This document shows, in pieces, positions 1,239-64,000 of a stretch of DNA of 64,000 nt. The position numbers and the translations under genes were made by a program. Numbering within the stretch: the stretch's first letter is position 1; each line of letters starts with the position of its first letter. Location of the stretch: contig OU015567.1 in assembly GCA_907165135.1 (NCBI GenBank), positions 62,001 to 126,000 of the forward strand, in the 5' to 3' direction. Origin of the DNA: Oikopleura dioica. Lineage: Eukaryota; Animalia; Chordata. The notes under the pieces were generated by a model, which searched no databases, was not told the DNA's origin, and was given only the letters and a program-made list of their open reading frames with translations.

Positions 1239-1545
1239 TGATACGGAAGCGGCTGTCCTGCAATTTATGCGCGTTCTCTAACTCTAGAATGCCAAGCTAA
1301 AAATGACGAGAATCAAATTTTTTAATTTGCGTGGTTTTATTTGTGATTTGAATGAGAAAAAGAAGCACGGCGCGCGGTTAAATACGGCGAGATTGAATCA
1401 ATGTTTTTGAACGAGCGGTTGTTTTTGAGCTTTTGAAAAGCTTTTGTTTTTGAAATCAAGGAAGAAAGCCCAAGGCCATCAAAGCAGTTTTTCTTTCGGG
1501 AAATCCTTACGGATCGTATTCTTGCCGATTTAGAGCTGAGCTTGT

Positions 1546-3862: not shown

Positions 3863-3897
3863 ATGGAACTGAAAGCCCTGGTCAGGCACCAGTTCCA
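3850..3897 (+). promoter_or_regulatory. -1 ribosomal frameshift signal (A AAA AAC plus downstream stem)
   Basis: Heptamer 3850-3856 is in X XXY YYZ phase with gag and pol is in the -1 frame. Stem TGGAACTG (3864-3871)/CAGTTCCA (3890-3897). Confidence 0.8.
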
Positions 3898-8319: not shown

Positions 8320-8369
8320 AAAAAGATGGGCGATAAAGATGCTCGTTTGGGACCCATGGAAGGTCACAG

Positions 8370-10578: not shown

Positions 10579-12116
10579 ATTTATGATAACGATGACCATC
10601 GTAAAAAAATTTTTTTTTTGAATTTTTTTTTCTGTTGGGTTTGAGAGGCTCAGAATCAACCAAAATGACGCTCGGAAGACGGCAGAAACGCTGCAAATAA
10701 AATTAGGGCAAAAAACGAAATTTCAAAATTTTGACCTCGTTTTTGGGCGATTCATGATAACGATGACCATCGAAAAAAAAATTTTTTGAATTTTTTTTCT
10801 GTTGGGTTTGAGAGGCTCATAATCAACCAAAATGTTGCTCGGAAGACGGCAAAAACGCTGCAAATAAAATAAGGGCAAAAAACGAACTTTCAAAATTTTG
10901 ACCTCGTTTTTGGGCGATTCATGATAATGATGACCATCGAAAAAATTTTTTTTTTTGAATTTTTTTTCTGTTGGGTTTGAGAGGCTCAGAATCGACCAAA
11001 ATGACGCTCGGGAGATGACAGGAACGCTGCAAATAAAATAAGAGCAAAAAACGAATTTTCAAAATTTTGACCTCATTTTTGGGCGATTCATGATAACGAT
11101 GACCATCGAAAAAAATTTTTTTGAATTTTTTCTGTTGGGTTTGAGAGGCTCAGAATCAACCAAAATGACGCTCGGAATACGGCAGAAACGCTGCAAATAA
11201 AATTAGACCAAATTACGAAATTTCAAAATTTTGACCTCGTTTTTGGGCGATTTATGATAACGATGACCATCGAAAAAAAATTTTTTGAATTTTTTCTGTT
11301 GGGTTTGAGAGGCTCAGAATCAACCAAAATGACGCTCGGAAGACGGCAGAAACGCTGCAAATAATATTAGGGCAAAAAACGAAATCTTAAAATTTTGACC
11401 TCGTTTTTGGGCGATTTATGATAACGATGACCACCGAAAAAAAAATTTTTTTTTTTTGAATTTTTTTCTAATGGGTTTGAGAGGCTCAGAATCAACCAAA
11501 ATGACGCTCGGAAGACGACAGAAACGCTGCAAATAAAATTAGAGCAAAAAACGAATTTTCAAAATTTTGACCTCATTTTTGGGCGATTCATGATAACGAT
11601 GACCATCGAAAATAAAATTTTTTTTTTTGATTTTTTTTCTGTTGGGTTTGAGAGGCTCAGAATCAACCAAAATGACGCTCGGAAGACGGCAAAAACGCTG
11701 CAAATAAAATAGGGGCAAAAAACGAATTTTCAAAATTTTGACCTCGTTTTTGGGCGATTCATTATAACGATGACCATCGAAAAAAAAATTTTTTTTTTGA
11801 ATTTTTTTTCTGTTGGGTTTGAGAGGCTCAGAATCAACCAAAATGACGCTCGGAAGACGGCAGAAACGCTGCAAATAAAATAAGGGCAAAAAACAAACTT
11901 TCAAAATTTTGACCTCATTTTTGGGCGATTCATGATAACGATGAACATCGAAAAAAAAATTTTTTTTTTTAATTTTTTTTCTGTTGGGTTTGAGAGGCTT
12001 AGAATCAACCAAAATGACGCTCGGAAGACGGCAGAAACGCTGCAAATAAAATTAGGGCAAAAAACGAACTTTCAAAATTTTGACCTCGTTTTTTGGCGAT
12101 TCATGATAACGATGAC
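10579..12116 (+). repeat. ~165-bp satellite, block 2
   Basis: Same monomer, resumes in phase after TSD ATTTA. Confidence 0.98.
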
Positions 12117-13249
12117 TGATGCCAATTACTCTAATTTATGACTCTCTAATCTAACTGCGTCTTGCAAAGGATGAGGCCTTAAAATACGAAACGTGGCTTT
12201 ATTATTTTGGTTATGAAGAGAGTGAAATTTCAATACAAATTTTTCCGAATTGCAAATTTTGCAGGTGCAAATATTTCCAAATAAGGCATTTCGCGCATTT
12301 CGCGCATATGTTTTTCTTTCCAATAATGACGCGGCGCTTTCGCGCCATTGTTATTTTCTTTTCATCAAATTGTTCGTAATCGCCACGCTCGTAATTATTG
12401 TTTTTTCTTGGTCAAATTTAATTTAAAATCATATCAAGAGATCAACTTCCCACTATGTGGCCATATCACTCTTGATAGAATTTTTTATCAATTTTAATTT
12501 TACTTGGTCCAAGTCCGTTTCCATAATCGTTGTCAGTCCATTGCGTCGTCGTTGTCGTCGTTGTAGTAGCTGGAGGTGTCGCCGCCATCGTTGAAGCTGC
12601 AGTTTTGTCGGTTTTGAGGAAAATGGTCAGTAGTCCTAAAGCGAGCCAAAAAAGTGTTCAATCAATTTTGCCTACCAGGAGCACTTACAGACAGCGCCAT
12701 CCCGCGGGTCACGGGGTCACACTGTCAAGCCGCAGGAGCGGAACTCAGCTAGAGGATGATAATTCATGCAACAGCTCCGTTGAAATCATAGAAGAGAGCC
12801 AATTGAAGTATTTTCCTATAAGCAGAATAATGCATTTCCAAAGCAGTCCGAGTCGTTGTTGATATCAAGGAAGAGACGAATTGTTTCATCAAAAATAATT
12901 ACCAGTCAGAAAGAATAAATTGAACATTAGAAAGTTAAATAAAACCGCCGAAACGGGTGGCTAAGGTGCCTTCAGAGAATGTTAAATAACGCGTACGTTA
13001 TAAATGAGAAATATAGATTTTGATGAACTCATGCTATCCAAAGATTTGGCTCCATAAATCTTCAGTTCGTTTAACTAGTGATTTTCATGCAAAATCAACC
13101 TTATTGGCGAAATTCGGGCCGTGAGTGGAAGGATTCAATTTTTATCTTTTATGTTCTTTTTCGCTATTCTTATCAGTATGACCCGTTGTGGGTATCTTTT
13201 TTTATTATTATAATTTGGAGCTTCTTTTACGAAAAAGAACTATTGAATC

Positions 13250-16200
13250 TTAAAATTTTGGTCCAAAAATAAGCTCGTTGTTTTTTCTTGGATGATTTGG
13301 ATACAGTTGTTCAAAGAAAATTTTAACAAATTCGATCATTTCAGTTTTGTTTTGAATAGCAGTTTTTGGAAGTTTGTATTCAGAAATCAGGACCTTTAAT
13401 TCGGGTTTTGTCAAATCGTAAAGAGTTTTCTCCTTTTTCAAGTTTAGAACTGAAAAAAACAAAAACTCTCCAGATTCGCTTTTTCGCCAATTAGGGTGAT
13501 TCTTTCGGATATACTCTCTTATTTTAATTCTTAATTCACCTACAGATTCCGTTGTAGTATAAAAGACCTCAAACTTATACAAAATATACCTAAGGGCTTC
13601 TCTCGTTAGCTCTCCTAGTTTCAAAATACACCCTTTCTCAATGTCCTCATCCTCCCTAATTCGTTCTTCAATATTTTTGAAAAATCAATATCCTTATTCT
13701 CAAATTTAAAAGCGATAGAAAGATTAAAATTTTGCTCACATATCATTTCTGAACAATCACTGGCTTCAGAATAAGAATTTTCCATATCTAAAATTTCTAA
13801 ATTTGGAATTTTTGAAGAGGGATTCGAATCTTTTGATGATTTTCTTTCTCTTTTTCGATCATTTTGTAGGCCTTCACCCTCGTTTGGATGACTTAATTCA
13901 AGTTCTCCCTCCCGATTAGCCGTTATGTCCAATTTGTCATATGAAATTAGATGTTCCGAATTATTATCAATCTGATTATGAACCGTTTCTGTCTCAATTT
14001 CAGAATCAAGTGTGACTTCCCAATGAGAATGCTCTTCTATTTCCCATTCAGAATCACAAATCGAATTCGATTCTCGTGGCAAAAAATCGTCAGGTTTTGG
14101 GATCTCATCCATAATTGACGAATTTATAGTTCCATTTACGGTTATATTTTGGTTCTCTATAATTGAAACAATAGAGTCTTCTTCGTCAGAAGAGTCAATT
14201 GATTCTAGTGTTTCAATTATAAAATCTGTAAATATATTTTCAAAAATTCCTTCGACAGAAAGAGAGACGAGCTTTTCGTACGCATTCTCCAGCAACTTTT
14301 CCTCGGAAGATAAACTTACTGGGGAATACGAACAATTTGAAAAATTTTCATGGAATCCTGAAGAATAGCTTTCGGACGTTTCTGTATCATATTGAGCGTC
14401 GGGGGAAAAACTCGGAATGCCCGAGCTTACTGTAATTTCCTTCCTATCATTATATTTTTTGAGATGATCGGCGTGTCTCCGATATTCTTTTTCCCCAGAT
14501 CTGACCGTGTACCACGTCCCCTCTGTGGAGCTACTAGTAACTTCATATGGGCCTAAAAAAGCTGGTTTTTTAGCGTGAAAATTTTTAATGAGAACTTGAT
14601 CACCGACCTTATATTTAACAAATTTAGGATTAGAAAATTTTTCAAGCCTGATTTGCTTCTCTTCGTCCAATAATTTCTTGATCGATTCAAAATTAATTTG
14701 TTCTCGTTCATGGTAAATCCTGTAATTTGGGTCAAAAATATCATGAGGGTGCTTAAATCCAAATTGAAGCGAGAATGGAGATGTTTTAGTGACCGAATGC
14801 TGTGAAGTATTTAAATCATGGACAATTTCTTGCAAAAATAAATCCCAGTTTTTATAATCACATTTAGCTCGCAGTCTACTTTTTAGGGTTCTATTAAAAT
14901 TTTCAACTTGACCATTTGTTGATGGATGTCTCGGTGGTGTAAAATGGGGCTCAATCGAATTTTCTTTCATAAATTTTTCCATTTCAGAATGCTCTCGAGC
15001 ATTATCTAGAATAACCTTTTTTGGGAAATAAGGATTTTTGAAAATAATGCTCTTAAATTTTCCAAGAAGATATTTTGAATCTCGAGATTTAAGCGGTTCA
15101 CAATAGCCAAATTTAGAGAAAAAATCAATCATAACTAAAACATATTTATTTCCAAAATCAGTTGGAGGAAGCGTGATAAGGTCAAATCCAAAAACTTCGA
15201 AGGGTCCGTCTGGAGTTTTAAATGATAATATTATTGGGATGAAAATAAGGCTTATCTTTCTGGCAAAACGGGCAAGTTTTTATAAATTCTTTTATACCAT
15301 TACGCATTCGCGGCCAAATATATTTCATTGAAATTTTTGCAAAAACTTGGTCGATTCCTGCGTGGCAATAGTCATGATAATTTTTTATTATTTCATTTTC
15401 GATATCCTTCGGCACGAGAACGCGACGATTATAAAATTCGTCAATGTAGGCTATTTCTCCACTTTCCAAAAAGGTCAATTTATCTCTCAAAAACGAATAA
15501 AAATTTATGTCCCCTTTGGGATTATTTGGCCATCTATCAATTTGCACGTATTTTCGAATTTCACTAAGTGTTGGGTCTAATTTTTGGATTTCACAAAATT
15601 TTTCTTGGGAAATTTGAATCGAATTAAGACTGACCTTATGTGAATTATTTCTACTCAAACAATCGCTAATTTTCATTTTTGATGAAGATTTTTGAATAGT
15701 TCGAAAGCAGAATCCCTGAATTTCAGTAATCCATCTAGCAATTTTTTGATTATTTGTCCTAAGCGATCTTATATATTTTATATTCGAATTGTCTGTTATC
15801 CAGTCGAATTCCGTATAAGAGAAATAAACAGCCCATTTTGTCATACAAGTTTTTGCAGAGTATAATTCCTTTTCGATAATTGTGTACTTTGACTGTGTTT
15901 CATTAAAATTTCCACTATTATAACCAACAGGGACCAAACAATCTGTAGAATGATGATGATTCTCGTCCCGACATTTTTGATCACAAATATACAGTGCTCC
16001 GCCGTAGCCAAGAGAGGATGCATCTGTTTCTAAAACAAAAACGCCTTGATCGGCTGGGGGAATTCTCAACTTCATTGCATTATTGCAAATTATTTCTTTG
16101 AGTTGTAAAAATGCTTGGGTGGCCTCATTCGTCCAGCAGAACGAATTTCTATATGTTTTTGTTATCGGTAATGCAATTGCCGCAAAATTTTTAATAAATC

Positions 16201-17859
16201 TTCTATGATAATTTAAAAGTCCAAAAAGACTTTGTGCACCTTCCTTAGACGTCGGGATTTTTAGGTTTTCAATCGCCTTGATTTTGTCTTTTGTTGGGGA
16301 AATTTCACCATTGGAAATAAAATAGCCGCAAAAATTTACAGACCGCGTAAAAACGAAGCTTTTCGTGAATGAATACGCAAATTATTAGCATCAAGAATCA
16401 TGAAAAATTTCTTTAAATTTAATAAATGCTCCTCTTCCGTTTTGCTATGAACTAAAAGATCATCCATATAGGGTAAAATTGCTGTTTTATCTACCCCTTT
16501 CAAGGCTTGGTCAATGATTCGCATGAAAAAAGCGGGCGCATTGCGGCAGCCCATCGGCATTCTCAAAAATCTAAATTGGCCGTGTTCAGTCGTAAACGCT
16601 GTCTTGTTTTTCGACTCTTCAGTCAATTCTATTTGATGAAAGCCTTTGATGAGATCGACCGAACTAAAAATTTTGCTATTCTCCAAATAAGATAGTGAGT
16701 CTTCTAAATTTGGCAAGGGATGATGAATTTGTATTGTTGCATCGTTAAGCTTTCGAAAATCAATTACGAGGCGCCATCGCCCGTCTTTTTTTCTGACCAA
16801 TATTGCAGGGCTATTCCAGGGGCTCGTACATTTTTCGATTATTTTATTCCCCGTAAATTTATCCAAAATATTTTTCCATTCCCGACGCAAACTAAATGGT
16901 TGTCTATAAGGCTGTGAAGAAATCGGGCACTGTGTATTTGTATCAATTGAAAATTTTTCAATAGAACACGCAGGAAGGGGATCATCATCATCAAGAAATA
17001 AATGTGTAACAATGTCTAAAAGGGCGTAAAAATCTTTTTCTACTTCTGGCGAGTTAATTTTACCGACTGAGATATTTTCCATATTTTTATTATTTGTGTT
17101 TTTGATTTGGGCAATTTCGACTATTTCATGTAATTTAGCAAAAACTGTTCCAGCTGGAATACGAATTGTTGTGTCTGTTGGATTAATAACGAGTAACCGA
17201 AAAATTGGGGAGTCTTTATCAACAATTTGTAAACTTGGAATAAGTTGCAGTTTTGAATTTCCGAGATTTGAATTTTCAAACGAGAGACTCATAGTTTTAT
17301 TGAAATTTTTAACCGAAAGATCAATTAATCTTTCTGATTTTCCTCTGAAGGAAAACGTTTCTGTTGAGAATGCGTCATATTCTTCAATCGACTCATTTCT
17401 TAAATTATCAGTAGCATTTTCATCCGAACTAATTAAATTAAGATTCGCGAACCGTTCAACCGGGCCTGCTTGAATCAATTTTTTACGATGAAGATTTATC
17501 AAAATTTCATTATCAAGAATCGCTGGCACTCCCAAAATAGGGCTAAGGTTATCCGAGACCACATAAAACCAGGACTTCCCCCAGGAAACATTTTCAATAA
17601 TAAATTCGGTTTCGATTTTGCCAAAAATTTCAATTTTTCCGCCGGTATAATTAACCGCCTCCATTTTTGTTTTTTCAATTTTTTTGTTTTTTGGAACATA
17701 TTTTTTACAAATACAATTTAATTGTGAGCCTGTGTCAAGTAAAAAACGTACATGTGAATCAAAAATTTTAGCATTTACAAAAAATTGCTCGCCAATTTTA
17801 TTTACAGAAATTTTCGGGATTGAAATTTGACCAGAATTTGTCCCGAAATTTAGTTTTTT
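13250..17859 (-). CDS. pol: Pol of B (pieces 16336-17898, 15218-16075, 13621-15132, 13250-13624)
   Basis: FLLDTGSQ protease, YMDD RT, VLETDAS RNase H, HHCC/DDE integrase, GPY, C-terminal extension. Several frameshifts. Confidence 0.93.
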
Positions 17860-18902
17860 TGCTCGACAGATCCCTGTTTCTCCCGACGCTTCAAACAATT
17901 TCTAGAAATGTGACCAAACCCATCACATTCAAAACATTTAATCTTAGGGCAACGCGGTTTAGTATGACCCCATTGATTACAATTACGACAGAAAGGGCTG
18001 CTCTGGGGGAGTCTGGGGATATCCAAATGGATATGGGGGAATTGCCGAGGGCGTTTGGGGCACGGGCTTATTTGTGATCTCCCTCTTTTCAATTTCGAGC
18101 TTTGCTACAGTCGCAGTCAACTGTTTGATCATGTCTGAGAGCTCTGAATTTTTGCGCTCATAATTAGCTTCCATTTGAGCGAGTCTTGAGTCAAGAATTT
18201 CACTTGTCTGATCGACAAAAGAGGCTAAATTCGTTTCAATCGAGGAAACACTGACACTCAAGAACCGCTCTCTGGAATCCAAAAAATCAGCAACTTCCTG
18301 AGCACTCTTTCTGTTATACCCATGATCTCGAAGAAATGACTTGTTGGCCGGTTCCAAACTTTTCATAAAATGAGCATCTGTTATAAACGAAACAGCGTCT
18401 AGTTTATCAGAAATAATTCCTGCAACCGTACGAATTCTCGTCAAATAAGAACCGAATTTTTCATTCATTTCGGACCGACGAGCCATATTTTCGAGTTCAT
18501 TTTGGGCCCGCTCCCGCTTCTCGTCCTCAGTTTCCTTGCCAAAAATAGTCTCTAAAAATTCAAAGGCCTTTTTCTCGGTCTCTAAATTTGCCATTTCCCG
18601 CCCGTGATTGCAAATAAAATCATGAGAGCAATTATTCCGAATACAGTCAACCGCCTGTCTTTCAAAAGCTTTTTCTAATTCAGCCCGATCGGACTCACGG
18701 TTATGATCTTGAATTGATTTTAAAAACAATTTTTCATGGCCGAAATTTTGTCAATCAAATTATTTTTAGAAATTTGAAATTCATAAGAAAGCATATTTGG
18801 CCGAAAATGTTGCCGAGAATTGAGGGAAGGGAATGGGGCAAAGAGAAAATCTTCGGGCCATTTTGTTACCTTGAAATTGGAGTCGCCGCTAGTGGTCGCC
18901 AT
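17850..18902 (-). CDS. gag: Gag of B (frameshifted pieces 18720-18902, 17983-18729, 17850-18092)
   Basis: Starts MATTSGDSNFK. Two knuckles CRNCNQWGHTKPRC and CFECDGFGHISRNC. Ends CAA AAA AAC TAA (slippery heptamer 17853-17859) followed by stem TTTCGGGA/TCCCGAAA. Confidence 0.88.
18892..18901 (-). promoter_or_regulatory. PBS of B (TGGCGACCAC), possibly tRNA-Arg type
   Basis: TGG abutting the 5' LTR end. The tRNA assignment is inferred from Arg tRNAs ending in ...GGUCG-CCA and is not verified. Confidence 0.6.
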
Positions 18903-19959
18903 GATGCCAATTACTCTAATTTATGACTCTCTAATCTAAGTGCGTCTTGCAAAGGATGAGGCCTTAAAATACGAAACGTGGCTTTATTATTTTGGTTATG
19001 AAGAGAGTGAAATTTCAATACAAATTTTTCCGAATTGCAAATTTTGCAGGTGCAAATATTTCCAAATAAGGCATTTCGCGCATTTCGCGCATATGTTTTT
19101 CTTTCCAATAATGACGCGGCGCTTTCGCGCCATTGTTATTTTCTTTTCATCAAATTGTTCGTAATCGCCACGCTCGTAATTATTGTTTTTTCTTGGTCAA
19201 ATTTAATTTAAAATCATATCAAGAGATCAACTTCCCACTATGTGGCCATATCACTCTTGATAGAATTTTTTATCAATTTTAATTTTACTTGGTCCAAGTC
19301 CGTTTCCATAATCGTTGTCAGTCCATTGCGTCGTCGTTGTCGTCGTTGTAGTAGCTGGAGGTGTCGCCGCCATCGTTGAAGCTGCAGTTTTGTCGGTTTT
19401 GAGGAAAATGGTCAGTAGTCCTAAAGCGAGCCAAAAAGTGTTCAATCAATTTTGCCTACCAGGAGCACTTACAGACAGCGCCATCCCGCGGGTCACGGGG
19501 TCACACTGTCAAGCCGCAGGAGCGGAACTCAGCTAGAGGATGATAATTCATGCAACAGCTCCGTTGAAATCATAGAAGAGAGCCAATTGAAGTATTTTCC
19601 TATAAGCAGAATAATGCATTTCCAAAGCAGTCCGAGTCGTTGTTGATATCAAGGAAGAGACGAATTGTTTCATCAAAAATAATTACCAGTCAGAAAGAAT
19701 AAATTGAACATTAGAAAGTTAAATAAAACCGCCGAAACGGGTGGCTAAGGTGCCTTCAGAGAATGTTAAATAACGCGTACGTTATAAATGAGAAATATAG
19801 ATTTTGATGAACTCATGCTATCCAAAGATTTGGCTCCATAAATCTTCAGTTCGTTTAACTAGTGATTTTCATGCAAAATCAACCTAATTGGCGAAATTCG
19901 GGCCGTGAGTGGAAGGATTCAATTTTTATCTTTTATGTTCTTTTTCGCTATTCTTATCA

Positions 19960-20293
19960 ATGACCATCGAAAAAAAAATTTTTTGAATTTTTTCTGTTGG
20001 GTTTGAGAGGCTCAGAATCAACCAAAATGACGCTCGGAAGACGGCAGAAACGCTGCAAATAAAATAAGGGCAAAAACGAAATTTCAAAATTTTGACCTCG
20101 TTTTTGGGCGATTCATGATAACGATGACCATCGAAAAAATTTTTTGAATTTTTTCTGTTGGGTTTGAGAGGCTAAGAATCAACCAAAATGACGCTCGGAA
20201 GACGACAGAAACGCTGCAAATAAAATAAGAGCAAAAAACGAATTTTCAAAATTTTGACCTCATTTTTGGGCGATTCATGATAACGATGACCAT
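19960..20293 (+). repeat. ~165-bp satellite, block 3 (2 monomers)
   Basis: Same monomer, between TSD ATGAC and TSD ACCAT. Confidence 0.97.
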
Positions 20294-21081
20294 TAATATC
20301 GATACGGCAGAAGAACATAAAAATAAAAATTGAATTATCCTTCAATCACGGCCAAATTACGCTAACTCGGATAGATTTTTGAATCTTTCACAAATCGAAT
20401 GTAAAACTTGAAATCTTGAGCCGATTTCATGAATCGCCAGCATGAGTTCATCATAATCCCTCTTATTCTCTGTAGCGTACGCGCTATTTCACTTCATTTT
20501 AGGCACATTAGCCAACCGTCTTCGGGCGTTAAAATCTCACTCTTTTAGGAACGCATGAATATTCAACCCTTTTCTATTGGAAACAACTCTCAATTCATTT
20601 TAGTTCTAAATTCTCTTTCTAGTTCAAATTAATCCCTTCTTATTTTGCTGTTTAAAACGATTCTCAAGCTTCAACCTGGAAAAGCTAAAAAACGACGGAT
20701 TCTTCCTTGATTTCACCCTGGACCATTTGTATGAATATTCATCCCCAGCTGAGTTCCGCTTTTGCGGCTTGACAGTGTGACCCCGTGCTCCGCGGGATGG
20801 CGCTGTCAGTAACTGCTCCTGGTAGGCGTTTTTGTTTGAACCCTTTTTGGCTCGATTAAGGACGAATGGCTATCATCTTTAAAAACGACAAAACTGCACG
20901 TTCTACAACGACGACAACTGCTCCATCAACGAAAACGACAACGAACGGACTGACAACGATTTTGGACATGGACTGATAACGGCTTCTTATCAAAAGTGAT
21001 ACGGCAACATAGTTGGAAGTTGATCTCTTGATAAGTCAAAATGATGATATGGGAATCGGCTGCTTCTTGCGTAACAATCAC

Positions 21082-24000
21082 TGATACCTTCCGAATAAAT
21101 AACAAAAATCAAAAAAAAAAATACAAAAAAATGAATAAAAAATGTTGCTCAAATATAAAAGCCCATAGTGCATGTTAATCAAAGAAAAATCAATAAGAGC
21201 CATATTGATTTTCCCTTGGGCCCTTAACTAAGTGGGTAAAGTTTTTGCTAATTTAATCAAAGGAAAATTAAGGGTTCAAGGGCTTTTACAAAATAATTAC
21301 TGGTTAGGGATTTTAGTTCGCATATTCTGCACGTACGCGTGTATCACATCAATTTATTATTGCATGAAAAGGATGATCGTTAAAACGTTAAAAATCACAT
21401 ATATCTATGCCTTTATTTACAGTGTTGATTGTAAATAAAAGTATAAGAAATTCTTAGGAAAATTTTATCTGAAAAAATATTTGTTTCTGTCATAAAAATC
21501 AACGAACCGCTGGGGAACGACTGCTGCTTTTCTTCCTTGATTTCGACGACGTTGGGACCTATCATCCTTACATGCTTCGCTTCCACGAAAGTGGCTGTTC
21601 GCAAAGTAGCCTGGAGCAGAATATCTCAATATGGCCAACCGCGAACATAAGCGCGACATGGTAATCAAAACTGTCGAGCCCGTTACGGCTGCTTTTAAAT
21701 TTTCTGACCAAAAAACAAAGATGGCAACTACACAACGAGCCGATGGCAGAGACAACGACGACTTCTACTTCTACAACACTTTGGACAACGATAAAAACGC
21801 TTGGAACGACTACGATTTGCTTAACGGCTTTGGAAACCCAGAAATACTTTCACAATCGGTGGGTCACATAGTGAGAAAGCCGGTTTTGAGAGTGATTTCA
21901 AGAAAATGCGCCAGCTGTGGCAAAGAAAAATACAAAAAAAAATGAAATTTGAAAAAGACGAAAATTATGTAACCACAATCATTGGGGTTACATAACGAAG
22001 ATTATGAAAATTATATAATGGCTATTTTGCCTTTGGATAAATTGAAAATGAAAAATTTCATCAGAAAGTTACATAATGCGAAAGACAATTGACGTAAATG
22101 GCGCCATGACTTCTTAACAATGGAAATCCAGCGCAAACCGGTTGGCAAAAACTTGACCTTCTCCATTTTCAAAAATTGATCCTCATTCTTGATCTTTCAA
22201 TAAATCACCAACAGCAAATAAAAATCTCGGAAAAAGCTCTAGAATTATTTATTCCACCGATTTCTGGGGGTAAATTTGTGGTCGAGTGTGATGCAAGCGA
22301 TCGGAGTTTCGGAGGAGTTCTATATTTATGCGCGGAAAAGATTCCATCTGAAAACCATGTTCATAATTCCGGCTGTCTACGGCCATGCGCATATCACAGT
22401 GGTAATTTTTCTGACACACAGATCAAGTATACGATTTTTGAAAAAGAAATTTTGGCTTCTAGAATTTGCATAAATAAGTGGAGCGTCTATCTGAAATATA
22501 CAAATTTTGATCTTATAACAGACAATGGAAATATGAAATATCTCAATTCGCTAAAAACAAATAATTCCCGTATTCAAAGATGGATAGCTGAGCTTATGAC
22601 CTTTAATTATAAAATTCTCCAGAAACCATCAAGTGCGCTTAAAATTTCAGATTATCTCTCAAGATACCCGGGAAAAACCGAAAAAGCGGCAATTTCTCTT
22701 ATCAAAATTGATACCAAAAATTTTATTGAGCTTCAAAACTTGACCCGATCTTACGGCTTATAAGACAATACGTCGGAATTGACAGATGGCCGAATAATCC
22801 GACGGAAAAAATTTCATATTATTTATTGCACCGGAAAAATTTATGTTTTCTCGAATCAGGGAGCTTATCCTAAGGGAAGGGAATCTAGACAAATTCTGCG
22901 TTCCAGAAGTTTTGCGTTCTGACCTTATGCGTGAATATCATGAAGGGGGTCACTCTGGAATAGAAATTACATTTTCAAAATTAAATCAAAAGTATTTTTG
23001 GGAAAAAATGCGCCAAGATGTAGTCGAGTTTATTAGATCATGCAAATACTGTCAATTAAATAAACCAAACTGTAATCCGAATAAAGCCGCCCCAAAGACA
23101 TTTCCATCTCCAACAGGGCCGTATCAACAAATGGGCTTTGATATGATCGGTCCTCTTCGGCCAACGGACAGTGGGAATATTTATATTTTTACTGCTATTG
23201 ATTTTTTCAGCAAAAAAAGCTTATGGGGTACCACTTAATTCTAAAAAATCAGAATATCTCCTCGATAAATTTAAGTCTATTCTTTTTTCAAACCCTTTCT
23301 TTCCCAAGTTGTTAATTTTCGATAACGCCCCTGAATTTTCAAAAATTCGTGAATTTTGTGCGGAAAATAATATTGAACTTAAAAACAGTCCACCAAGACA
23401 TCCAGCAACTAATGGTAGTGTCGAAAATTTTAATCGAACTCTTAAGAGCCGGCTTAAAGCCCGATGTCAGTTTAATAATTGGGACCGTTATCTTTCGGAA
23501 ACTCTTCACGAAATAAATAGTTCTAAGCATTCAGTCACAAAATTTTCTCCGTTTTCAATTGAAACAGGAATCGAGGTTCCACACTTTTTGAATGACCCCA
23601 ATTGGAGACAGTATAGGGATAAAATAAATATTGATTTTAAAGCAATTAAACACAATATTGATGAAGAAAAATCTCGGAGATGCGCAAGGCTCAAAAATGA
23701 AAAATTTCAAGAATACGCCCTCAATGAAAAAGTCTTGCTAAGAAATTTTCGATCAAACGACCCCCCATTTATTGGCCCCTACATAATTATTAATAAAACC
23801 CCTACGGTGTATTCTTGTAAAAATTTAGAGACAGGAAAAATTCTAATTCGCCACGCGAACGACTTAAGAAAATTTCATGAGCGCCAAGATAAAATCTCTC
23901 CAAAAATAGAGCATGATAATAATGAAATAGTAAGGGATGGGCACGAGGATAAAAATTCAATTGAGGGGTTTAGATATGTTGAGTTTTTCTCCGTCACAGC

Positions 24001-26380: not shown

Positions 26381-26640
26381 ATCACTGCGGCGAAAATGAA
26401 GAAAACAACGAGAAAAACAAGAGCGCGAAATGCGCCGCGCAAAATCAAAACATCCGCGAAATACTTGGCGAAATGCCCTTATTTGGAAATTTTACCATCT
26501 GCGCGGAATTGAAATTTGAAAATTTGAAATTCGAAAATCATTCTCGATCTTACCAAATAAAATAGCGTCGATTCCTGAATTTTTAATTGTTTCCTTTGCA
26601 AGTTGCAGATTAGCTTAGAGAATCATCCCTTTCGGTATCA

Positions 26641-31498: not shown

Positions 31499-32769
31499 AG
31501 AAGCTCAGAATCAACCAAAATGACGCTCGGAAGACGGCAGAAACGCTGCAAATAAAATAAGGGCAAAAAACGAACTTTCAAAATTTTGACCTCGTTTTTG
31601 GGCGATTCATGATAACGATGACCATCGAAAAAAAATTTTTTGAATTTTTTCTGTTGGGTTTGAGAGGCTAAGAATCAATCAAAATGACGCTCGGAAGACG
31701 GCAGAAACGCTGCAAATAAAATAAGGGCAAAAAACGAAATTTCAAAATTTTGACCTCATTTTTGGGCGATTCATGATAACGATGACCATCGAAAAATATT
31801 TTTTTGGGTTTTTTCTGTTGGGTTTGAGAGGCTCAGAATCAACCAAAATGACGCTCGGAAGACGGAAAAAACGCTGCAAATAAAATAAGGGCAAAAACGA
31901 ACTTTCAAAATTTTGACCTCGTTTTTGGGCGATTCATGATAACGATGACCATCGAAAAAATTTTTTTGAATTTTTTCTGTTGAGTTTGAGAGGCTCAGAA
32001 TCAACCAAAATGACGCTCGGAAGACGGCAGAAACGCTGCAAATAAAATAAGGGCAAAAACGAATTTTCAAAATTTTGACCTCGTTTTTGGGCGATTCATG
32101 ATAACGATGACCATCGAAAAATTTTTTTGAATTTTTTTTCTGTTGGATTTGAGAGGCTTAGAATCAACCAAAATGACGCTCGGAAGACGGCAGAAACGCT
32201 GCAAATAAAATAAGAGCAAAAAACGAATTTTCAAAATTTTGACCTCGTTTTTGGGCGATTCATGATAACGATGACTATCGAAAAAAAATTTTTGAATTTT
32301 TTCTGTTGGGTTTGAGAGGCTTAGAATCAACCAAAATGACGCTCGGAAGACGGCAGAAACGCTGCAAATAAAATAAGGGCAAAAAACGAAATTTCAAAAT
32401 TTTGACCTCGTTTTTGGGCGATTCATGATTACGATGACCATCGAAAAAAATTTTTTTTTGAATTTTTTTTCTGTTGGGTTTGAGAGGCTCAGAATCAACC
32501 AAAATGACGCTCGGAAGTGGGCAGAAACGCTGCAAATAAAATAAGGGCAAAAACGAATTTTAAAAATTTTGACCTCGTTTTTGGGCGATTCATGATAACG
32601 ATGACCATCGAAAAAAATTTTTTTGAATTTTTTCTGTTGGGTTTGAGAGGCTCAGAATCACCCAAAATGACGCTCGGAAGACGGCAAAAACGCTGCAAAT
32701 AAAATAAGGGCAAAAAACGAAATTTCAAAACTTTGATCTCGTTTTTGGGCGATTCATGATAACGATGAC
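31499..32769 (+). repeat. ~165-bp satellite, block 5
   Basis: Same monomer, resumes in phase. Confidence 0.98.
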
Positions 32770-33860
32770 TGATACCGATTTGCTGCTCAAATGCTCTCTT
32801 AGCTAGAATTCTTGCAAAGAATGACGCCAAAATTTCAAAACGTGGCTGTATTATTTTGAGTATGGAGAGAGTGATTTTTCAAATTTTCAAATTTTCAATT
32901 CGCATTTCGCGCAGGTGCGTTTCTTTCCAAATAAGGCGCGGCGCATTTCGCGCCATGTTTTTCTTTCCAAATATGGTGAGCGCTTTTCGCGCAATTGTTT
33001 TTCTGTCAATCGAAATTCGCCGAAACAGCCACGTTCGCTTCGAAATTAATCCCAAGAAATAAATTTTATCAAAAAGTTCAACTTCCCACTATGTGGCCAT
33101 ATCCCTTTTTGATAGAATTTAATAAATTTTTACTAATACTTTTCCAAAGCCAGTTCCAATAATCGTTGTCAGTCCATTGCGTAGTCGTCGTTGTTGCCAG
33201 AGAAGTCGCCGCCATTGTTGAAGCTGCAATTCTGTCGGTTTTGAGGAGAGTGGTCAGCTTTCCTTAAGCGAGCCAGAAAAGTGTTCAATCAATTTTGCCT
33301 ACCTAGGAGTACTTACAGACAGCGCCATCCCGAGGAGCACGGGGTCACACTGTCAAGCCGCTTAAAGCGGAACTCAGCTAGAGGATGAAATCCATGCAAC
33401 AGCTCTGTTGTAGTAGTAGAAAATGCCGATCGATTTTTTATCGTCAAGAAGAATTGCCATCATCGTTTTGAAGACATAGAAGAGTCAGCTTGATTCATCA
33501 ATAATAATTACCAGTTCAAAAATTAAATAAAAGAAGTAGTGAGCACTAGAAAGAGTTAAATAAAGAACCGCCGAAACGGGTGGCTAATGTGCCTTTGATT
33601 TGTGAAATAACGCGTACGTTATGAGGGAAAAATAGAGATTTATGAATTCATGCAAGCATCCGAGATTTGGCTCCGAAAATCGTCGGAACATAAAACTGTG
33701 AAATTCATGCCTAATCAACCTAATTGGCGAAAATATTTATGTGACTGGGATATTCAATTTTTCATTTTTTTTCTTGTGTTCTTTCCTTTATTCGTATCAG
33801 TATGACCACTCATGGGTATCTTTTTTCGGAGCATCTTTTAAGGAAGAAACAAATTGAATA

Positions 33861-36800
33861 TTAGATATTTGGTCCGAATATGAGATCATTGTTCTTTTTT
33901 GGATGATTCGGATATAATTTTTCAAAAGCAGAATTAATAAATAAAATCATTTCTGACTTATTTTGCAAAACACATTTTGGCAGGTTATACTCAGCAATAA
34001 GAACTTTCAATTCAGGTTTTTTCAAATCATAAAGAGTTTTTTCCTTTTTCAAATTTAAAATTGAAAAGAAAAGTAACTCTCCGCATGCATTTTTTCGCCA
34101 ATTAGGGTGATTTTTCCAAATATACTCTCTTATTTTTATTCTTAGATCTGATATCGTTTCCGTTGTCAAATATTGAACATCAAACTTATGCAAGATAAAT
34201 CTAAGTGCTTCTTTTGTTAATTCACCCAACTTCAAAATACACCCATTTTCAATTGCCATATTCTCTTCAAGCTCCTCAATTCTCGATTCTATTCTCTGGA
34301 AAAAACTTTCATGCTCGTTTTCTAATTTAAATGTTATTGAAGTATCGAAGTTTTCACAAATCATTTCCGACATATCATTTGACTCTTCATCAGAGCTATC
34401 TTTTGGGTCTAAATTTGGTATTTTAGAGCAAGGAATGGAGTCTTTCGATGATTCTCTTTCGCGTTTCCGATTTGCCGAAATATCTAATTTATCGTAAGAA
34501 ATAAGGGGTTCTTGATCTTCCGTTATTATATTTTCATGGACTGTTTCTGTTTCAACCGTAGATAATTCTTCGTCTACCGTCACTTCCCAATGAGAATTTT
34601 CCTCAATTTCCCACTCCGAATCAGATGAAATAAGGGACCCAGAGACCGGAAAATCGTCAGGTTTAGGTATCGCTTCAATATTTTGCGAACTATCGGGCTC
34701 TCTTAAACTCTGTTCATTCTCGATTATTGATACACAAGAACTTTCCTCAGAGGAAGATTCCATAGATTCAATTGTATCAACAATCAAGTCTGAAAAAATA
34801 TTCTCAAAAACAATATCAATTAATGAATTAACTATGTTGTCTATTTTTTCTTCTATTTCATCTTCCTTCATTGAAATAGGTGGACAAGAATAAAAACCAC
34901 TTGAAAAACTTTCTCGCTCGAAAACATTGTCTTTGTGGAAGGTCGAAAAATCGTCTTGAATATCTGGAAGTTCAACTGAGAGACCTAAATCTTCCGAATC
35001 CTCTTTTCGCGCGTTAAATTTTTTCAAATGATCAGCGTGTCGCCGAAACTCTTTATCATCAGACGCGACTGTATACCAAGTTCCCTCTTTCGATTTATTT
35101 TTTATTTTATACGGCCCAAGAAAAGCTGGTTTTTTCGCGTCGAAATTTTTGATAAGAACCATGTCGCCGATTTGATAAGGCACAAATTTTGGGTTTGAAA
35201 ATTTCTCAAGCCTATTTTGTTTTTCATCTTCGATCAATTTTTTAATTTGTTGAAAATCAATATCACTTTTTTCGAAAGAAGCCCTAAAATTTGGATCAAA
35301 AATGTCATGAGCGTTTTTCACGCCCATTTGAAGGGAATAAGGGGATGTTTTCGTGACTGAATGCTCGCTTGAATTAAGGTCATGGACAACCTCTTGAAGG
35401 TTCTGATCCCAATTTACTAACCCACAACGTGCACGTAATCTACTTTTAAGGGTTCGATTATAATTTTCCACTTGCCCATTAGAAGAAGGATGCCTTGGAG
35501 GAGTAAAATGAGGGTCTATATGATTTTCTTTCATAAATTTCTCGATCTCTGAATGTTCCCTAGCATTGTCGAGCACAACAATTTTTGGATAAATTGGATT
35601 TTTGAAAATCACACTTTTAAATTTTTCAAGGAGATATTTAGAATTACGAGATTTAAGAGGTTCACAATATCCGAATTTCGAGAAAAAATCGATCATTACC
35701 ATTACATATTTATTTCCATGATCAGTTGGAGGTAACGTGATCAGATCGAATCCAAAAACTTCAAAAGGTCCGTTTGGTGTTTTGAAGGTCAAAACCGGCG
35801 CTTTATTGGGGTGAAAATCAGGCTTATCTTTTTGACAATACGAACATGTTCTAACAAATTCTCTTATTGCTTGACGCATTCTAGGCCATATATACTTGAC
35901 GGATATTTTTGAAAAAACTTGATCGATTCCAGCGTGGCAATATTCATGGTAATTTTTAATAAGTTCACTCTCTAAACTTTTTGGAACTAAAATTCGTCTA
36001 TTTCCTGAATCATCGAAAAAAATAATTTGATCATTTTCCGAAATAGTCAAATTTTCTCTCAAAAGCCAATAAAATGTTATATCACCTGATGGATTGTGAG
36101 GCCATCTATCTATCGTCAAAAATTTTCTTATCTTGGTTAAAAGAGGATCAAGCATCTGAAGCTCGCAAAATTGTTTTTGAGTTATTTTAATTGAATTTAT
36201 AAGGGGCTGATTTTGAATCGTAGTTTGTCTACTCAAACAGTCACTTATCTGCATTTTTGACGAGGGTTTTTGAATTGTTCTAAAATTAAATCCTTGAATT
36301 TCCGTTATCCATCTCGTGATTTTTTGATTATAGGTTCTTAGTGTTCGAACGTATTTAATGTTTGAATTATCTGTAATCCAATCAAAACTATTGTAAGAAA
36401 GATAGATTGACCACTTCATCATGCATTGTTTGGCGGAAAATAATTCTTTTTCTTTAATTGTGTATCGTGATTGAGTTTCGTTAAAATTACCACTGTTATA
36501 GCCTACAGGGATCAAACACTCACTAGAATGGTGATGAGAATTATCCCTACAATTTTTTTCACAAATATAGAGTACCCCACCGTATGCATTATTTGACGCG
36601 TCTGTCTCTAAAACGAAAAGCGCATTGTCTACTGGGGGTATTTTGAGCTTCATTGCATTATCGCATATAATATTTTGAAGCTTGCTTAACGCGCTCGAAG
36701 CCTCGTCTGTCCATTTAAACCCGTTTCTCCAAGTTTTTGTAATTGGTAATGCTATTGCCGAAAAATTTTTTTATAAATCTACGATGAAAGTTTAAAAGTC

Positions 36801-38439
36801 CAAAAAGACTTTGCGCACTCTCCTTAGAACTAGGAATTTTAAGATTTCTTATAGCCTGAATTTTATCCGTTGAAGGAGAAATATTACCCTGAGAAATAAA
36901 ATAGCCACAAAATGTCACCGACCTTGTAAAAAATGAAGCTTTTCGAGAGTTTATCCTAAGATTATTCGCATCTAGAATATGAAAAAATTTTTTGAGGTTC
37001 AAAAAATGCTCTTGTTCTGTTTTACTATGAATAAGAATATCGTCCATGTACGGTAATATTTCGGTTTTATCTACACCTTTTAGTGCCTGATCAATTACTC
37101 TCATGAAAAAACTTGGTGCATTTCGACAGCCCATAGGCATGCGTAAAAATCTAAATTGACCGAACTCGTTCGAAAATGCCGTTTTATCTTTTGATTCTTC
37201 TGTTAAAGCGATCTGATGAAACCCCTTAATAAGGTCTATCGAAGAGAAAATAGTACTTTTATCTAAATACGACAACGAATCCTCTAAATTCGGCAGGGTG
37301 TAGTGCATCTGAATAGTCACATCATTTAACTTTCTGAAATCAATGACAAGACGAAATCGTCCATCTTTTTTTCTTACAAGAATACTCGGACTATTCCACG
37401 GGCTAGAACATCGCTCTATAAATTTATTATCCATAAATTTATCCAAAAGATCTCTTAAAACATTCCTCAAGCTAAAAGGAGTGCGAAACGGGGCTGAAGA
37501 AATGGGGAAGTCTGTATCTGTGTCTATTGAAAATTTTTCAATTGTACATTCTGGAAGCGAGTCATCCTCGTCCAACAAAAGATGTGCAAAATCATCTAAA
37601 AGAGCGTCAAAATCAATTTTTATTTTCGAAGAGTTAATTTTACCGACGGAAATATTTTTAAGGTTTTTATGCTTTATGTTTTTTATTCTCGCTATTTCAA
37701 CGATTTCATGTAATTTAACAAAAACTGTACCCGCAGGAATTTTGATGACTGTGTCTGTTGGATTTATAATAAGAAGACGAAATTTTGGGCAATTTTTATC
37801 GACAACTTGAAAGCTTGGGATAAGCTGCAATTTAGAATTTCCTAGATTAGACTGATCAAATGAAAGACTTTTCGATTTTTCAAGATCTTTGATTTTCAAA
37901 TCAATTATGCATTCTGATTTAGGCCTAAAAGAAAAGTTATCGGTAGAAAAACCATCATATTCACGATCCTTATTTTTGTCCTCGTTGATTTCAAAATTAT
38001 CGTCTGTTTTAATTTGATTAAGTTTTGCAAACCGTTCAATTGGTCCTGATTGAATTATTTTACGACGGTGAAGGTTTATCATTATCTCGTTATCTTGAAT
38101 AGCTGGCACTCCCAAAATAGGGCTCAAATTGTCAGGAACAACGTAAAATTCTGATTTTCCCCAATTTACATTTTCAATGATGATATCCGCTTCGACCTTT
38201 CCCAAAATATCAATTTGTCCGCCGGAGTAATTTACCGCTTCAGTTTTTGTTTTTTGGATTTTTATGTTTTTTGGTATGTTTTTCTTACAAATGCAATTTA
38301 ATTGTGATCCAGTATCTAATAAAAATCGAACAGGTGAATTAAAAATATTTACAGTTACATAAAATTGTTCGCCTATTTTATTGATGGAGATTTTTGGAAC
38401 GGAAATTTGACCAGAATTCGTTCCAAAATTTAGTTTTTT
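33861..38439 (-). CDS. pol: Pol of C (pieces 36715-38205 and 33861-36653 plus upstream protease)
   Basis: FLLDTGSQ, YMDD, VLETDAS, HHCC/DDE, GPY. One 930-aa ORF covers RNase H, IN and the extension. Confidence 0.95.
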
Positions 38440-39495
38440 GATTGATCCTGAGTGCTATTTTCCCGTCGTTTCAAGCAGTTTCGCCCGATATGACCAAAAC
38501 CCTGACACTCGTAGCATTTAATTTTGGGGCACCTCGGCTTAACATGACCCCATTGTTGGCAATTTCGGCAAAAAGGGGCCGCTTGGGGAGGTTGCTGGAA
38601 TCTGAACGGAAACGGCGGAATAAAATTTGCTGAGGCCGGCGGGTTAGCTGGCCTGCTAATTTCCTCATTTTTGACCTTCTTTTCGAGCTCTATCTTTGCT
38701 ACAGTCGCTGTTAATTGTTTTATCTGTTCAAGTAATTCCGAATTTTTGCGCTCATAATTTGATTCCATCTGAGTCAATTTTGAATCCAAAAGTTCGCTCG
38801 TTCGATCAACAAAGGACGTAAGATTTGCCGACTCGATCGAAGAAACATTCACAGTCAAAAATCGCTCCCGTGAGTCCAAAAATGTGGCAATCTCCTGAGC
38901 ACTCTTTTACTGACTCCATGATCACGTTAAAACGACTTATTCGCTGGCTCAAGGCTTTTCATAAAGTGAGCGTTAATAATAAAGTCTCTAGCATCTTGTT
39001 TATCAGAAATAAGCTCGGCGACGGTTTTAATTCGTGTCAAAAATGACGAAAACTTCTCATTCATTTCCGATCGTCGACAAAGGTTTTCTAGTTCGACTCC
39101 CGCCCGCTCTCGCTTTTCTTCCTCAGATTCACTTCCGAAAACAGATTCCAGGAAATCAAAAACTTCATCCATATTTTCGAAATTCGCCATTTCCCGCCCA
39201 TAATTATTCATAAATTCGTGAGAGCAATTATTGCGAATGCAGTCTACGACTTGTCTGTCAAAAGCTTTTTCTAAATTATTGCGGTCGGACTCTCGATTGT
39301 GATCCTTAATACTTTTGTCAAAAATTTTTCGCATTGCAGAAATTTTATCGCTCAAATTATTCTTGGAAATTGTAAATTCATAAGACAGCATATTAGGCCG
39401 AAAAATTGACGAGAATTGAGGGACGGAAAAGTGGCAAAAAGTAATTCTTCGGGCATTTTATTAACCTTGAAGTTGGAGTCTTGCGTGTTCACCAT
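38430..39495 (-). CDS. gag: Gag of C (frameshifted pieces)
   Basis: Starts MVNTQDSNFK. Two CCHC knuckles. Ends TCA AAA AAC TAA with downstream stem TTTTGGAACG/CGTTCCAAAA. Confidence 0.88.
39485..39494 (-). promoter_or_regulatory. PBS-position sequence of C (TGGTGAACAC), primer tRNA not assigned
   Basis: TGG abutting the 5' LTR. Only 6 nt match the Trp-type PBS. Confidence 0.5.
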
Positions 39496-40524
39496 GATAC
39501 CGATTTGCAGCTCAAATGCTCTCTTAGCTAGAATTCTTGCAAAGAATGACGCCAAAATTTCAAAACGTGGCTGTATTATTTTGAGTATGGAGAGAGTGAT
39601 TTTTCAAATTTTCAAATTTTCAATTCGCATTTCGCGCAGGTGCGTTTCTTTCCAAATAAGGCGCGGCGCATTTCGCGCCATGTTTTTCTTTCCAAATATG
39701 GTGAGCGCTTTTCGCGCAATTGTTTTTCTGTCAATCGAAATTCGCCGAAACAGCCACGTTCGCTTCGAAATTAATCCCAAGAAATAAATTTTATCAAAAA
39801 AGTTCAACTTCCCACTATGTGGCCATATCCCTTTTTTGATAGAATTTAATGAATTTTTACTAATACTTTTCCAAAGCCAGTTCCAATAATCGTTGTCAGT
39901 CCATTGCGTAGTCGTCGTTGTTGCCAGAGAAGTCGCCGCCATTGTTGAAGCTGCAATTCTGTCGGTTTTGAGGAGAGTGGTCAGCTTTCCTTAAGCGAGC
40001 CAGAAAAGTGTTCAATCAATTTTGCCTACCTAGGAGTACTTACAGACAGCGCCATCCCGAGGAGCACGGGGTCACACTGTCAAGCCGCTTAAAGCGGAAC
40101 TCAGCTAGAGGATGAAATCCATGCAACAGCTCTGTTGTAGTAGTAGAAAATGCCGATCGATTTTTTATCGTCAAGAAGAATTGCCATCATCGTTTTGAAG
40201 ACATAGAAGAGTCAGCTTGATTCATCAATAATAATTACCAGTTCAAAAATTAAATAAAAGAAGTAGTGAGCACTAGAAAGAGTTAAATAAAGAACCGCCG
40301 AAACGGGTGGCTAATGTGCCTTTGATTTGTGAAATAACGCGTACGTTATGAGGGAAAAATAGAGATTTATGAATTCATGCAAGCATCCGAGATTTGGCTC
40401 CGAAAATCGTCGGAACATAAAACTGTGAAATTCATGCCTAATCAACCTAATTGGCGAAAATATTTATGTGACTGGGATATTCAATTTTTCATTTTTTCTT
40501 GTGTTCTTTCCTTTATTCGTATCA

Positions 40525-42338
40525 ATGACCATCGAAAAAATTTTTTTGAATTTTTTCTGTTGGGTTTGAGAGGCTCAGAATCAACCAAAATGACGCTCGG
40601 AAGACGGCAGAAACGCTGCAAATACAATAAGGGCAAAAACGAACTTTCAAAATTTTGACCTCGTTTTTGGGCGATTCATGATAACGATGACCATCGAAAA
40701 AATTTTTTGAATTTTTTTCTGTTGGGTTTGAGAGGCTCAGAATCGACCAAAATGACGCTCGGAAGACGACAGAAACGCTGCAAATAAAATTAGAGCAAAA
40801 AACGAATTTTCAAAATTTTGACCTCATTTTTGGGCAATTCATGATAACGATGACCATCGAAAAATTTTTTTGAATTTTTTCTGTTGGGTTTGAGAGGCTT
40901 AGAATCAACCAAAATGACGCTCGGAATACGGCAAAAACGCTGCAAATAAAATTAGACCAAATAACGAAATTTCAAAATTTTGACCTCGTTTTTGGGCGAT
41001 TTATGATAACGATGACCATCGAAAAAATTTTTTTGAATTTTTTTCTGTTGGGTTTGAGAGGCTCAGAATCGACCAAAATGACGCTCGGAAGACGACAGAA
41101 ACGCTGCAAATAAAATAAGGGCAAAAACGAACTTTCAAAATTTTGACCTCGTTTTTGGGCGATTCATGATAGCGATGACCATCGAAAAAAATTTTTTTGA
41201 ATTTTTTTCTGTTGGGTTTGAGAGGCTCAGAATCGACCAAAATGACGCTCGTAAGACGACAGAAACGCTGCAAATAAAATTAGAGCAAAAACGAATTTTC
41301 AAAATTTTGACCTCATTTTTGGGCAATTCATGATAACGATGACCATCGAAAAAAATTTTTTGAATTTTTTTCTGTTGGGTTTGAGAGGCTTAGAATCAAC
41401 CAAAATGACGCTCGGAATACGGCAAAAACGCTGCAAATAAAATTAGACCAAATAACGAAATTTCAAAATTTTGACCTCGTTTTTGGGCGATTTATGATAA
41501 CGATGACCATCGAAAAAAATTTTTTGAATTTTTTTCTGTTGGGTTTGAGAGGCTCAGAATCGACCAAAATGACGCTCGGAAGACGACAGAAACGCTGCAA
41601 ATAAAATTAGAGCAAAAACGAATTTTCAAAATTTTGACCTCATTTTTGGGCAATTCATGATAACGATGACCATCGAAAAAATTTTTTTGAATTTTTTTCT
41701 GTTGGGTTTGAGAGGCTCAGAATCAACCAAAATGACGCTCGGAATACGGCAGAAACGCTGCAAATAAAATTAGACCAAATAACGAAATTTCAAAATTTTG
41801 ACCTCGTTTTTGGGCGATTTATGATAACGATGACCATCGAAAAAATTTTTTTGAATTTTTTTTCTGTTGGGTTTGAGAGGCTCAGAATCGACCAAAATGA
41901 CGCTCGGAAGACGACAGAAACGCTGCAAATAAAATTAGAGCAAAAACGAATTTTCAAAATTTTGACCTCATTTTTGGGCAATTCATGATAATGATGACCA
42001 TCGAAAAAAAATTTTTTTTTTGAATTTTTTTTTCTGTTGGGTTTGAGAGGCTCAGAATCAACCAAAATGACGCTCGGAAGACGACAGAAACGCTGCAAAT
42101 AAAATTAGGGCCAAAAACGAATTTTCAAAATTTTGACCTCATTTTTGGGCGATTCATGATAACGATGACCATAGAAAAAAAAAATTTTTTTTTTGATTTT
42201 TTTTCTGTTGGGTTTGAGAGGCTCAGAATCAACCAAAATGACGCTCGGAAGACGTCAGAAACGCTGCAAATAAAATAAGGGCAAAAAACGAAATTTCAAA
42301 ATTTTGACCTCGTTTTTGGGCGATTCATGATAACGATG
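40525..42338 (+). repeat. ~165-bp satellite, block 6
   Basis: Same monomer, with alternating variant monomers. Confidence 0.98.
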
Positions 42339-63891: not shown

Positions 63892-64000
63892 AAAAACTAG
63901 TCTATTTTCAGCTTAAAAAATGATTAGTAAAGATGAAAAAAAACGTCAAATTTCGACTCGCCCTTTTCCCGGAAATCTGCTGACCAAAATTATGAGATTT

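Follow-up and report, generated by a model that had tools for sequence, protein, structure and literature searches.

The stretch analysed here, called the window below, comprises 64 000 nucleotides of the Oikopleura dioica genome (assembly GCA_907165135.1, contig OU015567.1, forward-strand positions 62 001 to 126 000); all coordinates are positions within it. The window holds eight blocks of a tandem satellite together with long terminal repeat (LTR) retrotransposons of several lineages, named A to E. An earlier note on this DNA had proposed that elements B, C and E insert at mirror-symmetric, orientation-dependent positions of a short inverted repeat in the satellite monomer. We report where these elements and their relatives are inserted, and in which orientation.

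The satellite monomer is 162-172 bp long (a unit of approximately 165 bp) and has a single orientation throughout. The inverted repeat described in the earlier note is indeed present: the 12-mer CGATGACCATCG is composed of the 5-bp arms CGATG and CATCG flanking AC, an imperfect dyad. It occurs 54 times in the window, always on the plus strand, against 0 occurrences expected, and is found in about 51 of the approximately 71-80 monomers. The pentamers ATGAC (dyad positions 3-7) and ACCAT (positions 6-10) are mirror images about the dyad centre. The flanks are asymmetric, with TGATAA on one side and an A/T tract on the other. The idea that the dyad is a conserved binding site was rejected, conservation being 97% in the dyad and 96% over the whole monomer; as far as the sequence indicates, this equality does not favour a host binding site under maintenance.

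1-1243; 10579-12116; 19960-20293; 26641-28987; 31499-32769; 40525-42338; 43472-43816; 51997-56655: satellite blocks, all in one orientation
20122..20133, plus strand: intact copy of the dyad CGATGACCATCG, one of the 54 in the window

Besides the monomer, higher-order satellite periods of approximately 326 and 490-500 bp are seen in the regions 26661-28987, 40525-42338 and 10579-12116. There are two monomer length classes, 161-164 and 168-172 bp, apparently due to the A/T run directly after the dyad, where length variants are abundant in Logan contigs.

Two full-length elements, B and C, lie on the minus strand.

12117..19959, minus strand: element B, full-length Ty3/gypsy (putatively Tor-type) element, with LTRs, pol open reading frames (ORFs) and target site duplication (TSD)
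32770..40524, minus strand: element C, full-length relative of B, with LTRs, pol and TSD

The LTRs of B (12117-13175 and 18902-19959) are 1059 bp long and 99.7% identical; those of C (32770-33799 and 39495-40524) are 1030 bp long and 99.4% identical. Both elements are bordered on either side by the TSD ATGAC (12112-12116 and 19960-19964 for B; 32765-32769 and 40525-40529 for C), that is, by dyad positions 3-7, as the earlier note had stated for minus-strand insertions. The LTRs of B, C and a further element, D, range from 1030 to 1203 bp, start with TGAT, end with ATCA and are accompanied by 5-bp TSDs. The Pfam domains RVP, RVT_1, RT_RNaseH, Integrase_H2C2 and rve follow one another in this order on the minus strand of both B and C. 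By their LTRs, TSDs and pol order, B and C are Ty3/gypsy (Metaviridae) LTR retrotransposons. They belong to different families, with a DNA identity of 73-76% (60-73% in pol), and this low identity led us to reject the possibility that they are copies of one duplicated block. The gag-pol region of B (13621-18729) is broken into four ORFs, and its integrase tail stops early, leaving the first SAP-like unit incomplete. B may be a young copy, with LTRs 99.7% identical, that is already broken, or it may have been copied off a broken template. B (13176-13200) and C (33800-33825) also share the motif GTATGACC-N6-GGGTATCTTTT (plus-strand view), adjacent to the LTR, where the polypurine tract is expected.

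Element E and the element nested in it lie on the plus strand, and a further solo LTR on the minus strand.

20294..21081, plus strand: element E, left (U3-side) part of a solo LTR, left TSD ACCAT at 20289-20293
26381..26640, plus strand: element E, right part of this solo LTR, with the end GGTATCA, right TSD ACCAT at 26641-26645
21082..26380, plus strand: element D, nested in the E LTR, TSD ATCAC at 21077-21081 and 26381-26385
42339..43475, minus strand: solo LTR of a D-like lineage, TSD CGATG at 42334-42338 and CTATG at 43476-43480

The position and orientation given for E in the earlier note, a plus-strand insertion duplicating ACCAT at dyad positions 6-10, were both recovered, but E proves to be only a solo LTR, 1043 bp long (the two pieces with one copy of ATCAC subtracted), rather than a full element, and it is split by the nested D. 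Its first bases are TAAT in place of TGAT. The E LTR is 65% identical to that of B and 59% identical to that of C. Its plus orientation follows from this homology, the alignments scoring 573 (with B) and 426 (with C) on one relative strand versus 4 on the other, and an orientation opposite to that of B and C is secure from these alignments.

Element D forms a lineage of its own, with a pol identity of about 48-50% to B, C and A. The 5' LTR of D is truncated near position 22222 and fused to the RNase H coding region, and its 3' LTR (25176-26380) ends with CGTATCA at 26380. D is an internal deletion derivative (22150-22300), which has lost the last approximately 150 bases of the 5' LTR, the primer-binding region, gag, the protease and the reverse transcriptase, and keeps the RNase H and the integrase (Pfam). 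Its target within the E LTR reads TAACA[ATCAC]TGCGG, and the satellite counterpart reads TAACG[ATGAC]. The two agree in register and polarity and are equal at 8 of 10 positions; in the 50 kb of non-satellite DNA of the window, look-alikes of this quality have a background frequency of 4.4e-4 per position and strand. This target is the best evidence in the window for reading of the DNA sequence itself, or of something bound to it, over satellite chromatin in general.

The solo LTR at 42339 has the end TGATACC at both of its extremities. Its membership of the B, C and E group was considered and rejected: it scores 200 against D (opposite strand) and 37-60 against B, C and E. Its TSD corresponds to dyad positions 1-5 with one mismatch, two bases off the ATGAC site.

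Logan contigs covering 18700-21300 were recovered from four runs and are only 100-350 bases long; they yielded one useful junction, in run X4, where the satellite, at 20128 (...CGATGAC), passes without a gap into the start of a D-type LTR lying on the same strand. On this one contig, of depth 9.5, a plus-oriented D-type element would sit at ATGAC in another sample. A loose end at 19959 in the Logan contigs is an internal junction of B and no new flank.

The TSDs of the four lineages start at dyad positions 3, 3, 6 and 1, and the read-derived junction also falls at position 3. The probability that four independent insertions of four lineages start within 6 bp of a 165-bp unit is about 3e-4, a value computed with a 6-base window chosen afterwards. 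The dyad is a real integration hot spot for these elements.

The relation between site and orientation is less firm. In element orientation, the targets of B, C and E all read CGATG[RYCAT]CG, exactly as claimed in the earlier note, the junction lying at CG^ATG for the U3 end and at CGATG^RY for the U5 end. All three insertions are consistent with a link between orientation and the use of ATGAC or ACCAT. The pattern is therefore present in the sequence, but it is at the level of chance (n=3; P=0.25 with two mirror sites and random orientation), and an orientation rule in B, C and E is not established. The ATGAC site is used by B and C in minus orientation and by the D-type element in plus orientation; therefore the rule that ATGAC means minus fails across lineages. 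The two D events (2/2) show the coding polarity opposite to that of B and C at the ATGAC-type site. The clean partition of sub-sites among lineages, also put forward in the earlier note, did not hold, since D (plus) and B and C (minus) share ATGAC, and family A extends beyond ATTYA.

A different regularity is found in the LTR termini, which are TGATGCC/TGATAAG in B, TGATACC/TGATACG in C, TGATACC/T(G>A)ATATC in E and TGATACC/TGATACG in D. In 5/5 polarity-defined events, the TGATRCC end adjoins CGATGRY, or ATCAC at the look-alike site. In B, C and E this end belongs to U5, in D to U3.

Family A provides a comparison within the same array.

43812..51996, plus strand: full-length family A element, TSD ATTCA
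1239..10578, minus strand: outer A-like solo LTR, TSD ATTTA, at the same monomer position as ATTCA
1546-9572, plus strand: nested A element inside the outer A-like LTR, TSD CTTGT
28990..31498, plus strand: complex of family A LTR pieces, elsewhere in the monomer, TSD AGAAG

Measured between centres, the ATTCA site is 13 bp left of the B/C site, and the outer solo LTR is 78-82% identical to the A LTR. The use of ATTYA in both orientations, previously attributed to this family, is seen at ATTCA (plus) and ATTTA (minus), with AGAAG and CTTGT as exceptions.

The integrases of C, D, A and their metagenome relatives have a conserved C-terminal region in common, which is shortened in the B copy.

33861..34346, minus strand: C-terminal approximately 160 residues of the C integrase, two tandem helix-rich units, confidently modelled

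LxSYDKLD and a basic patch stand at the start of the region, ahead of the two tandem units. The reading frame of the C integrase is intact. In a structure model of the last 300 residues of C, residues 140-300 have predicted local distance difference test (pLDDT) values of 80-96. The second unit resembles the Hcc-1 SAP, emerin LEM and Rho N-terminal domains, with weak Z scores of 4.4-5.2 over 40-47 residues. A Foldseek search with the tail model gave no significant match, and the chromodomain PF00385 was not detected in the tails of B, C, D and A, even at E values up to 1. Among the proteins of the set, PF02037 is present in one distant relative, P0031. The tandem SAP/HeH-like tail is, on the basis of this model, a candidate targeting module of the dyad-seeking lineages.

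Our preferred explanation, held with a little more doubt than conviction, is that the dyad acts as a sequence-directed hot spot with fixed-polarity docking for a clade of Oikopleura Ty3/gypsy (putatively Tor-type) elements. The integrase complex cuts with a 5-bp stagger: for B, C and E, one strand is cut at CG^ATG and the opposite one at CGATG^RY. The dyad arms would present one and the same half-site on opposite strands, hence two mirror outcomes: docking with fixed polarity on one arm would give ATGAC, and docking on the other arm would give ACCAT with the element flipped. Either the tandem SAP/HeH-like tail or the integrase core, together with the LTR ends bound to it, might read the half-site. 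The polarity would most likely come from an asymmetry of the complex, either because its two LTR ends are unlike or because a tail sits close to one of them. With the TGATRCC end as U3, D would occupy the same site with the opposite coding orientation. A specific version of this scheme, which we consider rather doubtful, is that the unlike LTR termini break the symmetry of the intasome and encode the orientation, the TGATRCC end always standing beside CGATGRY and the termini of D being swapped. The sequence shows the hot spot, the positions of the cuts, the look-alike target of D and the tail common to the integrases; the polarity coupling, the part of the protein that reads DNA and the dispensability of a host factor are inferred. 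The readout of sequence suggested in the earlier note gains from the hot spot, from the look-alike target, which speaks for reading of the DNA itself by the D lineage, and from the candidate tail, while its orientation dependence depends on three events.

Several observations weigh against the fixed-polarity docking. B, C and E were each seen once, and their orientation is confounded with lineage. The coupling of polarity is based on five events, and the terminus rule, with a nominal P of 0.06, was found post hoc and counts as a hypothesis. The D-like solo LTR at 42339 is displaced by 2 bp, and the X4 junction comes from a single contig of depth 9.5 whose shorter side measures 20 bases. Family A uses one absolute site in both orientations, so that close relatives show no coupling. 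The nearly equal conservation of dyad (97%) and monomer (96%) gives no sign of a maintained protein-binding site. For the tail, the structural matches are weak (Z under 8, below the reliable level), and Pfam gives no match in the tails, with no SAP match in that of C.

The best placed of the alternatives, unlikely in itself, is a hot spot without polarity, at which a two-fold symmetric complex would make the mirror cuts equally, with the element in either orientation, and the pattern of B, C and E would be a coincidence. Intasomes of the retroviral type have two-fold symmetry and, as a rule, no preferred orientation. The pattern of B, C and E has a probability of 0.25 under this two-site model, ATGAC hosts both minus B and C and a plus D-type element, and the single site of family A receives insertions in both orientations. 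Such a hot spot accounts less well for the two events of D, which agree in polarity with respect to an asymmetric motif, part of which (TAAC) lies outside the dyad, and for the 5/5 polarity-defined events that fit the type of LTR terminus.

Less likely again is a sub-site fixed by lineage whatever the orientation, with B, C and D directed to ATGAC, E to ACCAT and the D-like element to CGATG, the arms being told apart by their flanks. This explanation has to be taken seriously because family A, apart from its exceptions, behaves in this way at one absolute site, with ATTCA in plus and ATTTA in minus orientation. Lineage and orientation are inseparable in B, C and E, each observed once, so that a site fixed by lineage accounts for them equally well, and the look-alike target of D has the asymmetric flank TAAC. 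However, the exact mirror relation between the E site and the B/C site would then have to be a coincidence; B and C, 25% diverged in DNA, share a site, whereas E, slightly more distant by its LTR, has another; and the window offers no positive evidence for sub-sites of this kind.

Chromatin proteins or AT-rich scaffold DNA are frequent binding partners of SAP/LEM-like modules, and a host structure to which the integrase tail docks, either a dimeric protein bound to the palindrome or a nucleosome phased on the monomer, would agree with a monomer of 162-172 bp, near the nucleosome repeat, and with the tethered precedents Ty3, Ty5 and Tf1; it is nevertheless quite improbable, since D is inserted at a look-alike 10-mer in an LTR, off the satellite phasing, and the dyad is not more conserved than its surroundings, and, being compatible with polarity coupling, it partly overlaps the fixed-polarity docking that we prefer.

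Further copies were sought in sequence collections. In IMG/VR, the junction patterns gave chance matches only, and the satellite was present in none of 232 loci. The long junction pattern had no match in the JGI metagenome contigs, where a 20-base satellite word gave a single match, bacterial and due to chance. A protein search with the 930-residue RNase H-integrase ORF of C in a set of 5.8 billion proteins returned no copy from this genome. The closest proteins are marine (seawater) metagenome sequences with 52-56% identity. The contigs of these relatives (L233, L234 and L235) are collapsed, circularly permuted single-LTR assemblies without flanks: L233 has a 141-bp terminal overlap, and the order in L235 is pol, LTR, gag. 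These sequences probably originate from other appendicularians.

Some resemblances between the satellite and the LTR ends were also recorded. The octamer TGATAACG, located between the family A site and the dyad in every monomer (e.g. 20109-20121), matches the LTR terminus TGATACCG at 7/8 positions. The satellite minus strand ATCGTTATCATGA matches the virtual U5-U3 junction of C, ATCGGTATCA joined to TGA, at 12/13 positions, and the dyad arm CGATGAC is similar to the B terminus TGATGCC. Local alignments of the satellite with the LTRs or with the two-LTR junction reach scores at most 2.7-3.6 standard deviations above shuffled sequences, and these scores stem from 9-13-base matches around TCATGATAAC. 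These resemblances are only a lead, either to insertion of the elements next to sequences that mimic their own ends or to an origin of the satellite from an LTR junction.

The final satellite block ends with ...ATTCATGATAA, one base short of the dyad (region 56645-57343), and is followed directly by 12 copies of a GC-rich 57-bp tandem repeat. Further repeats of 126-133 bp lie beyond the last block, at 59105-59413 and 60071-60375. Either another element using this spot or the border of the array may account for the end of the block; the window itself stops at 64000.

The Tor elements of Oikopleura dioica have TSDs of 4-5 bp and show signs of recent activity (Henriet et al. 2015, PMC4402516). 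The elements described here share with them the host, the Ty3/gypsy order of genes, LTRs that are almost identical and 4-5-bp TSDs (PMC4402516). In that article, the word satellite is absent and no position-specific integration is reported. According to the telomere-to-telomere genome paper, subtelomeres tend to hold retrotransposons or long-period repeats, and nothing further is said of them (PMC8008620). Base-precise satellite targeting by these elements thus looks undescribed in PMC4402516 and PMC8008620.

The finding is a variant of known tethered or site-specific LTR integration. As in the site-specific integration of Ty3, independent insertions stay within a few nucleotides of a single feature. 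The insertion sites of Ty3 lie within bases of the start sites of RNA polymerase III (Pol III), and the binding of its integrase to Tfc1 affects the orientation of integration (PMC6101501). The two systems are alike in superfamily and in a precision of a few nucleotides, and Ty3, tethered by TFIIIB in budding yeast, offers through its second integrase contact a precedent for an influence on orientation. They differ in that Ty3 reaches Pol III start sites via host proteins, whereas the targets here are a 12-bp satellite dyad and, for at least one lineage, a look-alike site outside the satellite, and the C-terminal module is another one. Tf1 of fission yeast is guided by Sap1 sites, the competence of which depends on their orientation relative to the replication fork (reviewed in PMC5371812). 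The likeness would lie in an LTR element placed next to the sites of a DNA-binding factor, with orientation-dependent competence. Tf1, however, needs Sap1 and replication-fork barrier activity, has a chromodomain and targets promoters, none of which is seen here.

Chromoviruses and the centromere-seeking LTR elements of plants are also enriched in satellite arrays, and they are targeted by a C-terminal extension of the integrase, the role for which the tail is a candidate here. Their targeting works with a chromodomain, through chromatin marks and without a fixed nucleotide; the elements studied here lack the chromodomain, and their position is fixed to a few bases. Nucleotide-precise, orientation-specific insertion into tandem repeats is known from SART and TRAS, in telomeric repeats, and from R2, in 28S ribosomal DNA. 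These elements differ in using a sequence-specific endonuclease and target-primed reverse transcription, which is inherently polar. The integrase complex is nearly symmetric, and therefore a polarity of LTR elements would need a special explanation.

How near-symmetric retroviral and LTR integrase complexes could choose an exact base as well as a direction is poorly understood. A fixed polarity on a 12-bp dyad would, if true, provide a simple natural system for the study of target reading, its assets being several diverged lineages, more than one sub-site, an additional integrase tail in common and an inexpensive DNA substrate. If the LTR termini do encode the orientation, the satellite array would be a ready-made natural assay substrate. 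Should the polarity be due to chance, the elements would still clearly exemplify the targeting of a satellite at base level by LTR retrotransposons of an animal. If true, the fixed-polarity docking would also explain how active elements are confined to a harmless subtelomeric repeat in a very compact animal genome.

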